From sequence record LC727699.1: a stretch of DNA of 64,000 bases. One strand, given 5' to 3'. This document shows positions 25,178 through 55,224 of the stretch, in pieces. Position 1 is the first letter of the stretch. Each line of letters opens with the position of its first letter. The notes below the pieces were generated by a model that ran no database searches, was not told where the DNA came from, and was given only the letters and a program-made list of their open reading frames with translations. A program made the translations under genes and the position numbers.

Positions 25178-27094
25178 ATGTCTAATGAACAACAGGTTAC
25201 AAATAAGAAAAAGATTAAGGGCATTGAAGCCAAACATATTACTTATTGTACTGATCAATTTGGTAAGTTTACAGATGCGCATTTCGTTAAAGAACGAATT
25301 CATTTTGAAGATGGTACAACTGCAAATAATTTAAGGATGTGGGAAAACTACCAGCGTCCTTTTTGGATTACCTCAAAAGGAATGCGTAACCATAAAGAAA
25401 AGAAAGATTACGAATATGAGCGTAACTTAGTTAAATACATGTCAACTCAAATTGACATGAAACGTAAGATTAGTAAAATCCTAGGTGACTATTCGGCTAG
25501 ATCTCTTCGTCAACTAGCGCGTAGTCCTTACCTATATGGCAGTGATGTTAGTTCAACCTGTTATCTGAAGCATGATTATCAAGAACGTTATCCTGGTCTA
25601 ATCTCTCTAAACACTGTTGCTGGCGGTGACATCGAGACCAACGTTTATGAAGCTGAGAACGATGGTCAGATTATCTGTATGTCAGTTACACATAAGAACA
25701 AAGCTTTCTTAGCCTATTTAAAACGATGGGTTAGTGATATTGAAGATCCAGTGAAAGAGACATTAGAACAAGCACAAAAAGAAGAGGTATTATCACATCT
25801 AATTAAAGAACGTGGTCTAGATATTGAAGTAATGGTTGTTGAAACACCAGTAGATATTATTATTGAATGTTTTAAACGACTACATACCTGGAAACCAGAT
25901 TTCTTCGCATTCTGGAATATTAGCTTCGACATTGGTAGAATCTTAAAAACATTAGAACACTATGGTGTTAATCCAGCTGATGTTTTTTCTGATCCATCGG
26001 TACCTAAGAATTATAGGTATTTCCATTTTAAGATTGATGAACCTATGACCACCACTGCATCTGGGGTCACTAAATCTAAAGGACCGGAGGATCAATGGCA
26101 TTGGATTACAGCACCCTCTAGTTTTCAATGTATCGATTCTATGTCAACTTATCGAGTAACTCGATTAGCTAAAGGACGTGATCCTAACTATCGGTTAGAG
26201 TCTATTCTTAGAAAAGAACTAAACATCGATAAATCCACGACCATTAAAAATGATAAGGACTTAGAAGATTTTATTGAAGGTTTTAATAAACAACTAGTTG
26301 ACCGACCAGGCGGCGTTATTACTAAATATATTAAAAATGTAGGTAGTAATGAATGGGTACCGGTGGATGATTTTATATTAAATGATAACTTTACCTATGG
26401 TGATTCTATTAGATATGTAATGGAATTTGGTAAGTTAACCTTTAAAGAAACTGCACATCTTGGTGGTATCGATTGGCACCGTGAGATGCAGACTAAGCAT
26501 AAAATCAAATATGGTCTTTATAACATCATCGACTCCATTCGACTAGAACAACTTGATGAACAAGTAAATGACCTTGGTCGCTCTATAAGTCTATTCTCTA
26601 AGGCATCTGACTATAAGAACTTTAGTTCTAACCCAAAACGACTATGTGACGATATGCACTTCTGGTATTTGAATAGACCAGAGCCATGTGTCATTGGTTC
26701 AAGTTCAGATCAGATGGTGCATGAACTTGATCAATATGTTATTGGCCATAATGATTGGATTGTTACACTACCATCATACATGGCAGGTCCAAATGGATTG
26801 CAGTGTGTTAAAGATTTACCGAATTATAAAACCTTAATCTTCTGTCATATCGCCGACCTTGACATCGTGTCGACATATCCTAACGTTAGTCAGATTCTAA
26901 ATATTGCACGTGAAACATGTGTGATGGAATTCTCAATGATGGAAGGAATTAGTGAACACCATCGCCGTGAAGTTGGCGTAAACTTAACAGGTGGTAGGGT
27001 TAATGCTATTGAAATCACACAGAAGATCATGGGTGCTCCTAAAATGGACACCCTGCTAGAGAAGTTTATTAATACCTATAAGAACCCAAAGTAA
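25178..27094 (+). CDS. Family B DNA polymerase N-terminal fragment: 3'-5' exonuclease plus palm motif A (gp82 homolog)
   Basis: ExoI GDIETN, ExoII WNISFDI, ExoIII YNIID, motif A DLDIVSTYPN; no motif B or YGDTDS motif C. Confidence 0.8.
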   Translation: MSNEQQVTNKKKIKGIEAKHITYCTDQFGKFTDAHFVKERIHFEDGTTANNLRMWENYQRPFWITSKGMRNHKEKKDYEYERNLVKYMSTQIDMKRKISKILGDYSARSLRQLARSPYLYGSDVSSTCYLKHDYQERYPGLISLNTVAGGDIETNVYEAENDGQIICMSVTHKNKAFLAYLKRWVSDIEDPVKETLEQAQKEEVLSHLIKERGLDIEVMVVETPVDIIIECFKRLHTWKPDFFAFWNISFDIGRILKTLEHYGVNPADVFSDPSVPKNYRYFHFKIDEPMTTTASGVTKSKGPEDQWHWITAPSSFQCIDSMSTYRVTRLAKGRDPNYRLESILRKELNIDKSTTIKNDKDLEDFIEGFNKQLVDRPGGVITKYIKNVGSNEWVPVDDFILNDNFTYGDSIRYVMEFGKLTFKETAHLGGIDWHREMQTKHKIKYGLYNIIDSIRLEQLDEQVNDLGRSISLFSKASDYKNFSSNPKRLCDDMHFWYLNRPEPCVIGSSSDQMVHELDQYVIGHNDWIVTLPSYMAGPNGLQCVKDLPNYKTLIFCHIADLDIVSTYPNVSQILNIARETCVMEFSMMEGISEHHRREVGVNLTGGRVNAIEITQKIMGAPKMDTLLEKFINTYKNPK

Positions 27095-27462
27095 TATATC
27101 AGTGGAAGCGCCGAGGAGGATATGAATGTTCATCTGTTGGTGACAAAAGATTCTCGGCTCTTTACGCAAGGCTTCCTGATGGCAGAACAATTGAGGAAGC
27201 TTGGCAGTTAGATTGTAAAGGATATCGCATATACTCCAACCATTGGAAAGCTGGTAAAGGAAAACCACCACTAGACGGGTATAATCCCAAATATGATGAT
27301 TATAAAAATCTGTGGAAAGTATGGGCGGTATCTAATAAACATCTAATGGATGAATTGCGTCAGAATGCAAAAGAACATGATAACTATCTTTCTGATGTTT
27401 TTGCTTCTACTGATATTTCACAGGCACGTGCTCTAGCAGAACTACTTAATGAAGGATATTAA
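27094..27462 (+). CDS. Unannotated 122-codon frame without ATG start, NADAR-like motif pattern
   Basis: IYQWKRRGGYECSSVGDKRFSALYARLPDGRTIEEAWQLDCKGY...KGKPP...STDISQARALAELLNEGY*; open from 27082; missed by the ORF track. Confidence 0.7.
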   Translation: MYQWKRRGGYECSSVGDKRFSALYARLPDGRTIEEAWQLDCKGYRIYSNHWKAGKGKPPLDGYNPKYDDYKNLWKVWAVSNKHLMDELRQNAKEHDNYLSDVFASTDISQARALAELLNEGY

Positions 27463-27530
27463 AAAATGGAAGGTATTCCTAATTAAATATTATCAATTGA
27501 TCATTACTGCTAACATAAACTTCGACACAT

Positions 27531-27560
27531 CATAAAACCCTCCCATTACGGGAGGGTTTA
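27531..27560. terminator. Bidirectional hairpin AACCCTCCC-ATTAC-GGGAGGGTT
   Basis: Between convergent genes; CATAA on the 5' side. Confidence 0.7.
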
Positions 27561-27565
27561 TTTCG

Positions 27566-29080
27566 TTAACTAATTTGGTATTTTAAATTCTGATTACCGT
27601 TTAGAACATAAATCTTACCGTCATTATTAAACGTATTGGCAAAACCTGCATCCACTAAACCAGTTTCTAAATTACCTAAATTTATCCATCGTGCTAATCG
27701 TGGTTCATAATACTTAATTGGTGCGTTATTTTGATTTTCACCAGCGATTACATAAAGTTCACCAGATGGGCGTATATTAATAGCTGCACCAAGAGGTATA
27801 CCTGTAGTTATTGGTTTGGACCAATTATTGTTGGTTTGATTGTACGATATGATTCCAGTGTTAACACCAGCACCAACCGTACCACCAATAACGCATACGC
27901 TATTATTATAAATACTCACTGAATAATCTTGGGTATATTCCCCAGTATCATTAAATGCTGCACCACTGGTATATGTATCTGTAGTTGGATTGTACATTAA
28001 TGTAAATCCACGATTATTTGTCGCAGTTGTATCAGCTGCACCTAATATGTAGATTAACCCATTAAGACTAGTTCCACGTGCATACCGGCAAGCTATCGTG
28101 CCTGGTGATTTTATTTCCCATGTATTAGTTGCAGGATCATAACACTGCATATCTTTAGTAAGTACACCATCTGTGGCACTTTCACCACCATAGAAATATA
28201 CTTTACCATTAAATGCAACAGCCGAGCATTGTTTAACTGCTATAGGCGTACCAGTTGGTTGTAATGTTGTTAACTTACCCGTGACTAAATTCAGTGTACG
28301 TAGAGCAGTATTAGCATTATTCTTACCACCGTAATAATAGACTAAGTTACCTATTTGGGCACCTGCTGCCATTTCGTTATCAGTTTCAAAATCAGTAAGT
28401 TTAATAACATTATCTTTAACGAATGGATATGTACCACTAGCATAAACCACTGGACGCCAACCTTGGGTTGCAGCACCCGTTTCACTACTTGACGAGCTAG
28501 TTATATCAATCGCATAGTAGCCACGATAGAGCTGGTCATTAACTGGATCACTACCTGGGTCTCTTCCCCAGTTAGTAGTACCATCAGTGCTAATACCACC
28601 AGCGACCGCTTGGTTAATACCTAAGTCATTATCTGTAAATTTATAAGGCCAGTTAGCACCATTTAAATTAGATACGTGAACATTATAAAGTAACCTTTGC
28701 CATTCTGATGTGGCACCAGCCATTGTTAATAAACCAAATTTATAAATGTTCCCCATAAATCTAACTTCATAGTCACCATTACGGAGTCCGGCATTATTAA
28801 GCCGTGATTTTTGTATTGATTTACGAGCTGGTTTCTTTGGTATGTAACAAGTAACATTTTTATTAGAGAACTTTAACCATGGTTGTCCATCATTGATTAC
28901 TGTTCCAAATGTCATATTAACTAATTTAGCTGCATCATCATAACCAAATAATTCTGAAGATGTTGTTTCACCATACAAACCTAATTCCCTTGTCCCAGCT
29001 ATCAGTGTTTTAGGACCTGGATAAGGATCGGAATATATAGGCGTATTTGTTAGTCCAGAAGACAACAATAACTCAAACAT
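27566..29080 (-). CDS. Virion (tail-associated) protein: phiKZ paralog-family N-terminal domain plus six-blade Kelch beta-propeller
   Basis: N-terminal MFELLL...GPKTLIAG...GLYGE...WLKF; Kelch blades VYYYGG, VYFYGG, IYILGA, VCVIGG, LYVIAG, IYVLNG. Confidence 0.75.
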   Translation of the reverse strand: MFELLLSSGLTNTPIYSDPYPGPKTLIAGTRELGLYGETTSSELFGYDDAAKLVNMTFGTVINDGQPWLKFSNKNVTCYIPKKPARKSIQKSRLNNAGLRNGDYEVRFMGNIYKFGLLTMAGATSEWQRLLYNVHVSNLNGANWPYKFTDNDLGINQAVAGGISTDGTTNWGRDPGSDPVNDQLYRGYYAIDITSSSSSETGAATQGWRPVVYASGTYPFVKDNVIKLTDFETDNEMAAGAQIGNLVYYYGGKNNANTALRTLNLVTGKLTTLQPTGTPIAVKQCSAVAFNGKVYFYGGESATDGVLTKDMQCYDPATNTWEIKSPGTIACRYARGTSLNGLIYILGAADTTATNNRGFTLMYNPTTDTYTSGAAFNDTGEYTQDYSVSIYNNSVCVIGGTVGAGVNTGIISYNQTNNNWSKPITTGIPLGAAINIRPSGELYVIAGENQNNAPIKYYEPRLARWINLGNLETGLVDAGFANTFNNDGKIYVLNGNQNLKYQIS

Positions 29081-54735: not shown

Positions 54736-55224
54736 ATGGCTGAATTTATTATAGGTAAAGATATATTCAATGTACCTGGTGATCTTTATCTAATCACTGT
54801 TAATGTTGTTGGCGTCATGGGCGCTGGTTTAGCTAAATCGTTTAAAGAAAAGTATCCTGAACTTTTTGAAAGATACAAACACGATTGCAAAAAGAGAATT
54901 ATTACTATTGGTAATCCGGTTATTTACAAAGCATCCGATGGCAAACGTTTTATGATGTTTCCCACTAAGGATAATTGGCGGAACCCATCTCAAATTAGTT
55001 TCATTGAACGTGGACTAGAGTGGATGATGGAGAACGTATCGGATTCTGCGGAAAATGAAGAAGACTGTATTCATCCAGATTGGAAAATTATCATACCACC
55101 TTTAGGATGTGCTAATGGCGGACTAGATTTTTCTGATGTTAGAACTATCATTGAAGACTGGTCTAATCACATGCCTAACCAAATTGTGGTTGTTTATCCG
55201 CCGTGGATGGATTCATCGGTTTAA
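54736..55224 (+). CDS. Macrodomain ADP-ribosyl hydrolase, DarG/TARG1 (Poa1p-like) type (gp104 position)
   Basis: VNVVGVMGAGLAKSFKEKYP, FPTKDNWR, PPLGCANGGL motifs. Confidence 0.88.
   Translation: MAEFIIGKDIFNVPGDLYLITVNVVGVMGAGLAKSFKEKYPELFERYKHDCKKRIITIGNPVIYKASDGKRFMMFPTKDNWRNPSQISFIERGLEWMMENVSDSAENEEDCIHPDWKIIIPPLGCANGGLDFSDVRTIIEDWSNHMPNQIVVVYPPWMDSSV

Follow-up and report, generated by a model that had tools for sequence, protein, structure and literature searches.

The question raised by this locus is what is encoded by an open reading frame (ORF) that has no start codon at its head and lies in the -1 frame directly behind a DNA polymerase gene, and by what means such a frame could be translated. 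The frame is in a window of 64,000 nucleotides (nt) of sequence record LC727699.1, the positions of which are the coordinates used throughout. The window is from a phiKZ-type jumbo phage; 48 Pseudomonas jumbo-phage genomes match positions 26500-28000 in a megablast comparison, 34 of them at ≥99% identity, including PA7, KTN4 and SL2, and phiKZ itself was among the matches in a protein search. The polymerase gene encodes the counterpart of phiKZ gp82, the N-terminal subunit (DNAP-N, 638 amino acids, aa) of a split B-family DNA polymerase (bioRxiv 10.64898/2026.09.30.755723). An earlier note on this DNA, made from its letters, had read the hidden frame as a possible NADAR-like eraser of ADP-ribose that, if fused by frameshifting, would ride on the replisome. 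Our analyses indicate that a -1 frameshift very likely fuses a 122-residue domain to gp82, and they partly support the view that this domain is a compact member, or a close structural relative, of the NADAR/YbiA N-glycosidase superfamily.

A hidden frame behind the polymerase gene

Translation revealed that frame 1 of positions 27082-27462 is open for 126 codons, and since the first ATG, GTG or TTG of this frame occurs only at 27346, the ORF of the domain is both hidden and start-less. The polymerase gene ends AAC CCA AAG TAA, and the same letters read in the -1 frame give CCC AAA GTA ATA TAT and so on, which is the hidden ORF; the predicted trans-frame product would have 638 + 123 = 761 aa. 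From end to end the hidden frame matches PHROG 9995, a family of unknown function (E 1.8e-55). Purifying selection on the frame is strong, also in the portion before any start codon. Of the ten differences that separate the window from phiKZ, nine are synonymous and one is non-synonymous when read in the hidden frame, versus one synonymous and nine non-synonymous in each of the other two frames. For the first 58 codons, which are upstream of any start codon, the ratio of non-synonymous to synonymous substitution rates (dN/dS) in the comparison with PhiPA3 is 0.016. The hidden ORF is not a sequencing artefact, as the arrangement recurs in 48 phiKZ-like genomes and in contigs from RNA libraries.

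A slip site conserved among related loci

Comparison of 26 related loci from GenBank, IMG/VR and ENA, which fall into clades A (12 loci), B (6) and C (8), revealed an in-frame X_XXY_YYZ heptamer (CCCAAAG, GGGAAAG or AAAAAAG) that is open into the domain at all 18 loci with the domain in the -1 frame, 12 of which are without any ATG, GTG or TTG. The heptamer thus occurs at every locus (18/18) at which a -1 slip would be required and at none (0/8) of those with the domain in the +1 frame, where it would not.

Clade A is composed of the window, phiKZ, PhiPA3, 201phi2-1, Viktualia, Phabio, phiHQ, HPP-Temi and four further loci (L015, L024, L025 and L037). A stop codon lies directly 3' of the heptamer in 11 of the 12 and one codon later in the twelfth, 201phi2-1. 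The tail of the polymerase is unconserved in this clade apart from the heptamer. The codon preceding CCCAAAG varies (AAC, CCC, TCC, GCC, CTC or GTC, encoding N, P, S, A, L or V), its third base is always C, and in L037 the site C_CCA_AAG is replaced by G_GGA_AAG with the slip pattern retained. The heptamer is thus conserved beyond coding need, with compensatory variation. Six clade A lineages are considered start-less because the codon at the position of the initiating Met of free-standing homologues is ATA, GTA, ACA, ACT or GTT.

In clade B (Noxifer and five metagenomic relatives) the heptamer is A_AAA_AAG, 36-96 nt before the polymerase stop, and the -1 frame crosses a variable linker into the domain, with a start codon in 0/6 loci. 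Clade C (D6, Psa21 and relatives) has the domain in the +1 frame and no heptamer; since there are also GTG or TTG starts in all eight loci, these phages probably make the domain as a free protein. At the D6/Psa21-like loci L011, L012, L026-L028 and L031-L035 the +1-frame domain overlaps the end of the polymerase gene by ~27 nt, and the Met-position codon is mostly GTG or TTG and in some CTG, ACG or CGG with a TTG or GTG a few codons upstream. Independent initiation is assumed for these loci, although a +1 or -2 event would also be possible.

Programmed -1 frameshifts at X_XXA_AAG sites include those of E. coli dnaX (A_AAA_AAG) and of lambda G/GT (G_GGA_AAG). The gp82 site shares with them the class of heptamer, a shift-prone Lys AAG codon in the A site and an expected output of two products in a fixed ratio. 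Unlike those systems, the gp82 slip site abuts a stop codon, and neither a conserved downstream hairpin nor a conserved upstream Shine-Dalgarno stimulator was found. In dnaX, frameshifting truncates a replisome subunit, whereas the gp82 slip would instead append an enzyme-like domain to a polymerase subunit. The RNA 3' of the heptamer folds somewhat better than shuffled sequences (z -1.3 to -4.9), and the adjacent stop codon would be the sole conserved candidate stimulator.

Contigs from four RNA libraries span the junction and have no base inserted or deleted at the heptamer. Transcriptional slippage or RNA editing was therefore rejected as the means of joining the frames, since these contigs carry the genomic heptamer, in which the A run is short; rare variants would be invisible in contigs. 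A -1 frameshift that fuses the domain to gp82 is very likely on the strength of the 18/18 slip sites and of the single-ORF fusions described below, and to this extent the earlier note's proposal of a frameshift-borne passenger of the replisome is strongly supported. Two points count against it: the RNA 3' of the heptamer has no stimulatory structure shared between loci and no Rfam match, and the 761-residue product is a prediction from sequence. The literature that we searched held no report of a gp82 frameshift or of a NADAR-like domain in chimalliviruses, and the preprint describing the gp82 polymerase mentions neither a frameshift nor a NADAR domain (bioRxiv 10.64898/2026.09.30.755723).

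The domain family and its fusion partners

The domain belongs to a large family. A word-based search returned 500 homologues, of which most stand alone, have ~122-130 aa and match no Pfam domain, and an exhaustive profile search returned 838 cluster representatives for which there is no Pfam, NCBIfam or PHROG function. The genes of the free-standing homologues that were inspected lie in modules, early or for replication and recombination, of phages and phage-plasmids. Among the chimalliviruses in the phage collection, the domain was found only in Pseudomonas phages. P0290 (L048:5001-17621) and about 40 other representatives of 2,000-6,100 aa have the domain inside giant proteins without a Pfam match, often near the C-terminus; P0290 is encoded on a 47-kb contig amid other large unannotated genes. 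Possibly, these giant proteins are large virion or injected proteins of podophage-like viruses.

Some distant relatives carry the domain on replication proteins in single ORFs. In a protein of 698 aa (P0346), encoded on a contig that also carries a PhiKZ_MCP gene for a phiKZ-type major capsid protein, a gp82 homologue (E 8e-37) is followed by the domain in one uninterrupted ORF. In a second protein of 603 aa (P0271, L051:5001-6812) the domain is N-terminal and the remainder is a full-length homologue of the chimallivirus RNase H-clamp (Rhc), an accessory subunit of the chimallivirus polymerase, with 24.5% identity (E 6e-16) to a "ribonuclease H" of the phiKZ group. At a third locus (P0267/L049, the chimallivirus-like contig WPCG01120037.1) the polymerase tail and the domain are in frame and CCC AAA G is now in the zero frame. 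This locus was given little weight because there is another frame break inside its polymerase gene, at L049:2940-3060 (gene calls of 482 and 236 aa), which may come from an indel in the assembly or from intervening DNA. The domain has thus been joined repeatedly to the phiKZ-type replisome by different genetic means.

The domain partners in the 87 multidomain relatives are DUF4326 (19), SLOG domains (~8; YAcAr, cpYpsA and DprA-like), RNase H (3), DUF488-N3a (2) and, in one protein each, an AlkB-like dioxygenase, a guanylate kinase and a PIF1 helicase; a Pfam NADAR or Macro domain was found in 0/87. DUF4326 and SLOG are also the published partners of NADAR (PMC9503650, PMC7824862), and on account of these common partners the domain occupies the place of NADAR in such architectures.

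A "little finger" (LF) insert in the polymerase has been reported in some Pseudomonas chimalliviruses only (bioRxiv 10.64898/2026.09.30.755723). A strict coupling of this insert (gp82 residues 350-415) to the domain was considered and rejected, as P0346 is fused yet has no LF.

Fold and candidate active site

The AlphaFold model of the domain has a predicted local distance difference test (pLDDT) score of 96.8 and indicates a YbiA-like alpha+beta fold. A Foldseek search, the structural check against NADAR that the earlier note had proposed, did find similarity: the top match was the Geobacter lovleyi DarG1-type antitoxin 8bat (template modelling, TM, score 0.57 on the query), and the only other matches of comparable TM score were YbiA (2b3w, 0.53) and the Phytophthora NADAR 8bau (0.43), so that the structural matches consist of the three solved NADARs. 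In BFVD, a library of viral models, the weak matches that came after family members were mostly annotated as NADAR proteins. The order of the elements is as in a model of YbiA made likewise, with a first strand, a short FS turn, a DG hairpin, a helix with Glu and then Lys, a basic loop, two long helices, a last strand with an acidic end, a loop and a C-terminal helix.

In NADAR enzymes the catalytic Glu and Lys are essential and lie on the first long helix as E-x6-K (E88/K95 in the DarG1-type antitoxin of E. coli C7, E36/K43 in AdfN) (PMC11543638, PMC11257639). Their candidate counterparts in the domain, E34 and K42, are spaced by x7 on or directly after helix 33-41, which was matched to helix 47-53 of YbiA. 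The loop GKGKPP with K55 stands between helices at a place equivalent to the RDRSKPL loop of YbiA, a type of loop (G-K/R-x-K/R-P-L in the superfamily) part of which lines the phosphates of ADP-ribose in NADAR. D101 follows strand 98-100, as E125 ends strand 122-125 in YbiA. The residue of the last strand separates NADAR subfamilies, with Glu in YbiA, Asp in the DarT1-linked proteins and His in the T4 type (PMC11125620), and by this residue the domain would resemble the DarT1-linked BC4488 subfamily. All of the candidate residues are well conserved: over 147 diverse domains E34, Q38, K42, K55 and D101 are 97-99% conserved (E34 98%; K42, K55 and D101 99% each).

Several structural observations stand against a NADAR assignment. 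The residue equivalences between the domain and YbiA were judged by eye from sequence and secondary structure, not from a superposition. The D..WG loop of NADAR (D..WG.G in the superfamily), which contacts the ADP-ribose phosphates (D130/W133 in 8bau), is absent from the domain, in which the loop between the last strand and last helix has 9 residues versus 18 in YbiA and no conserved Trp-Gly. Further, only short turns remain of the two helices that follow the catalytic helix, and the whole domain has 122 residues versus 150-230 in the superfamily.

Sequence comparison with NADAR

The peptide in which the earlier note had seen the N-terminal NADAR/YbiA pattern, RFSALYARLPDGRTIEEAWQLDCK, corresponds to domain residues R19-K42 (27148-27219). 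The order of its residues does match that of the YbiA-family consensus built here, FSNF..LDGK.WPTSEHYFQAQK, and that of the superfamily's FS...DG...E..[aromatic]Q...K motif with its invariant Glu and Lys. The spacing is similar and not identical, with FS-DG 2 residues shorter, DG-Glu 3 shorter and Q-K 1 longer than in YbiA. We consider the motif to be above chance because it coincides with the fold match and is nearly invariant over the 147 members.

Sequence comparison did not place the domain in the NADAR family, and its results also count against the assignment. The motif by itself is not statistically significant. The Pfam NADAR model (PF08719) had no match at E ≤ 1 for the window protein and none at E ≤ 10 among 54 family members. 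A profile search of PDB sequences returned only chance matches, to ribosomal protein uL3, and hhalign against a YbiA alignment, a weak test as that alignment is of low diversity, gave a probability of 0.13-0.17 (E 0.34-0.45), with 13 columns aligned (FSAL..DGRT with FSNF..DGKT) and nothing beyond them in local or global mode. In addition, there was no NCBIfam match for the domain and no usable ESM Atlas match for 201phi2-1 gp143, and canonical NADAR was absent by the Pfam model from the nearest phage genome searched (G001). The NADAR reading therefore stands as far as fold, motif and fusion context are concerned and fails as regards membership by sequence.

Alternative explanations

The alternative with the best prospects, although we consider it unlikely, accepts both the fold and the frameshift and holds that the domain hydrolyses an N-glycosidic compound other than ADP-ribosylated DNA, with a soluble immune signal derived from ADP-ribose, a nucleotide, an RNA adduct and a modified base as candidates. 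YbiA itself is a small-molecule N-glycosidase that acts on riboflavin intermediates, most phage NADAR, Macro and SLOG proteins are predicted to target soluble ADP-ribose derivatives (PMC9503650), and the commonest partners of the domain, DUF4326 and SLOG, are nucleotide- or ADP-ribose-processing domains; the absence of the phosphate-binding WG loop and the many homologues that are free-standing genes fit this alternative as well. A nucleic-acid substrate is indicated, however, by the fusion of the domain in different lineages to replication and repair proteins, namely three replication proteins (the polymerase N-subunit, Rhc and PIF1 helicase) and the AlkB-like repair domain. A tether to a nuclear polymerase would also ill suit a signal whose presumed place of synthesis is the host cytoplasm.

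It is improbable, in our assessment, that the domain is translated alone, by re-initiation or from a non-standard start (ATA in the window), as a free protein for which the heptamer is coincidental. Some lineages do have a start of their own, from which a free form may also be made, and these tell against an exclusively frameshifted product: PhiPA3 has an ATG overlapping the stop (TAATG), 201phi2-1, Viktualia, phiHQ and L015 have GTG, and the D6/Psa21 group, with GTG or TTG, is clearly on its own start. Most members of the family are, moreover, free-standing proteins of ~122 aa. Against separate translation, the five different codons found at the Met position across start-less lineages leave no conserved near-cognate start, and the Noxifer group has a start-less domain frame that shares 36-96 nt with the polymerase gene, with A_AAA_AAG upstream. 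The change of CCC to GGG in one lineage with X_XXY_YYZ preserved, the invariable C at the end of a preceding codon whose amino acid varies, and the existence of polymerase-domain fusions in a single ORF are likewise arguments for the slip.

Still less probable is that the domain has no catalytic role and is an accessory of the polymerase, serving for instance in protein contact, DNA binding or nuclear import on a NADAR-like scaffold. Its similarity to active NADARs is undetectable by sequence, part of the ligand-binding loop is lost, and other inserts without an assigned role, among them the LF domain, occur in particular lineages of the Pseudomonas chimallivirus polymerase. However, identity is at least 92% at thirteen polar or charged positions across the 147 domains, which differ widely in architecture and host; such conservation is typical of an active site and not of an interface with one partner, and the family is mostly found without any polymerase.

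We give practically no credence to a decaying gene or a sequencing error, in which a normal gene from the ATG at 27122 would have lost one A in the run 27145-27148, even though a strong GAGGAGG Shine-Dalgarno-like sequence accompanies this ATG 24 nt before the run and one added base would join the frames, since it is refuted by the conservation in homologues of hidden-frame residues upstream of the run (Y.W.R.GGYECS..GD), by the identical arrangement in RNA-library contigs and in 48 genomes that were sequenced independently and by purifying selection over the whole frame, the GGAGG and ATG being by-products of the G-G-Y-E-C codons that recur in PhiPA3.

A putative eraser on the replisome

The ADP-ribosylation of guanine by DarT1 is reversed by NADARs (PMC11543638, PMC11257639), and the thymine ADP-ribose made by DarT2 is reversed, as was found experimentally, by phiKZ gp104 (AdfM), a nuclear macrodomain protein (PMC13309987). 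The earlier note had suggested that the phage may carry erasers for both DarT classes. For the DarT2 class this is borne out, since the macrodomain encoded at 54736 is gp104/AdfM by its Pfam Macro match and by having the length and position of PHIKZ104, and AdfM has published activity (PMC13309987). The DarT1 side is less secure, as the free-standing homologues of the domain that were inspected have no DarT-like neighbour.

The account that we favor, that the frameshift delivers a NADAR-type N-glycosidase eraser on DNAP-N, runs as follows. Ribosomes finishing gp82 would meet C_CCA_AAG and the stop, and a fraction of them would slip back one base and read 123 more codons, yielding a 761-residue DNAP-N with the domain at its C-terminus. 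The domain would most likely cleave an N-glycosidic bond between ribose and base, and the best guess for its substrate is ADP-ribose put on DNA bases by host DarT1-type toxins, or a similar adduct. Tethered to the polymerase, the domain would pass through the selective import route of the phage nucleus and reach the single-stranded template at the replication fork, where it would complement the macrodomain eraser AdfM. Two observations weigh against this role. No ADP-ribosyltransferase (ART) or DarT gene adjoins the free-standing homologues inspected, and two studies of T4 NADAR conflict on protection from DarT1 in cells (PMC11257639, PMC11125620), such that the fold does not predict specificity. 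We therefore hold the account as a whole tentatively, with its chance of being correct a little below even.

The nearest functional parallels are two characterized phage proteins. T4 gp30.3 (AdfN), which removes DarT1-made guanine ADP-ribose (PMC11257639), is like the domain a phage-borne orphan of the same fold class, for whose Glu and Lys the domain has candidate counterparts, and a plausible counter-defence eraser. Unlike the domain, AdfN belongs to the canonical NADARs of the Pfam type, has His in its last strand and is a free protein from its own gene with proven activity, whereas the domain is smaller, would be polymerase-borne and is a putative enzyme. AdfM is from the same phage, and its proposed role, clearing ADP-ribose from replicating DNA inside the phage nucleus, would be shared by the domain; it differs in having the unrelated macrodomain fold, a separate gene, import via PicA and experimental proof of its function (PMC13309987). 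Compared with the NADAR superfamily as a whole, the domain has the predicted fold, element order and fusion partners in common and is without significant sequence or profile similarity and without a paired DarT gene.

Features and annotation of the region

The positions of the features discussed are collected in Table 1.

Table 1. Features of the gp82 locus and the gp104 gene, in window positions.
Feature	Position	Strand	Remarks
DNA polymerase N-subunit gene (phiKZ gp82, PHIKZ082, DNAP-N, 638 aa)	25178..27094	+	phrog_3011 DNA polymerase, E 1.2e-241; zero frame of the proposed frameshift
Slippery heptamer C_CCA_AAG (X_XXY_YYZ)	27085..27091	+	Spans the final two sense codons of the polymerase gene
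-1 frame extension, 123 codons (V + 122-residue domain)	27091..27462	+	Stop TAA at 27460-27462
Polymerase stop TAA	27092..27094	+	Immediately 3' of the heptamer; possible "shifty stop" stimulator (putative role)
Compact domain with predicted NADAR fold, 122 aa, PHROG 9995	27094..27459	+	
29-codon ORF annotated in several GenBank records	27122..27211	+	Different frame from the domain; probably spurious
N-terminal motif RFS...DGR.IE..[WY]Q.D.K	27148..27219	+	97-99% conserved over 147 domains; includes E34 and K42
E34 and K42	27193-27195 and 27217-27219	+	Candidate counterparts of NADAR catalytic Glu and Lys; putative equivalence
GKGKPP basic loop, G54-P59	27253..27270	+	Resembles YbiA RDRSKPL loop; equivalence by eye
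Annotated 38-aa "PHIKZ082.1"	27346..27462	+	Domain tail read from an internal Met; phrog_33573 matches residues 89-126
D101	27394..27396	+	Directly after the last beta-strand; candidate counterpart of NADAR-subfamily Glu/Asp/His
Intrinsic-terminator-like hairpin	27535..27559	+	Closes the polymerase and extension unit; faces convergent gene gp83
Macrodomain protein gp104 (AdfM)	54736..55224	+	Pfam Macro E 4.8e-07; length and relative position as PHIKZ104

Public records of the phiKZ group carry the 29-codon ORF, the 38-codon PHIKZ082.1 or both, or omit the ORF, and those of Phabio, phiHQ, D6, Psa21 and Noxifer have N-terminally truncated versions of the domain annotated. The GGAGG and ATG of the 29-codon ORF arise from the hidden-frame codons for the conserved G-G-Y-E-C, and this ORF and PHIKZ082.1 look like annotation debris of the single frame of the 122-residue domain. 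As GenBank records split or omit the domain ORF, proteomic searches using such annotations would miss the full domain and the trans-frame junction.

The polymerase N-subunit gene of PhiPA3 (L005) is annotated in pieces, with gene 085 ending ~580 nt before the true polymerase stop, and HPP-Temi (L010) has an HNH endonuclease gene within its polymerase region; such splitting suggests introns or mobile insertions in the polymerase gene in some lineages. In the window, the convergent neighbor gp83 (27566-29080, minus strand) is a virion structural protein with matches to Kelch-repeat beta-propellers (Pfam E 1.9e-16; phrog_16120).

Implications

The results provide a testable identity for a widespread phage protein family of 838 cluster representatives. 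If the proposed activity is correct, phiKZ would possess a second, mechanistically different ADP-ribose eraser beside AdfM; the handling by the phage nucleus of small toxins that modify DNA is a question of current interest (PMC13309987). The phiKZ DNA polymerase, for which a structure without the extension was reported in October 2026, would also have a different composition, and the appending of an enzyme-like domain to a replicative polymerase would be an unusual phage use of frameshifting.

A broader proposition, which we regard as doubtful, is that nucleus-forming Pseudomonas phages build an eraser of base adducts, a compact NADAR-type glycohydrolase, into their replicative polymerase, such that by a conserved -1 frameshift a set fraction of DNAP-N carries it into the phage nucleus and clears ADP-ribose or a related N-linked adduct from the template strand as the fork arrives, with the eraser in other lineages borne on Rhc or in direct fusions; this would represent a general form of replisome-coupled counter-defence and a large unannotated branch of NADAR. 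The arrangement suggests that fusion can solve the problem of nuclear import for an acquired gene.

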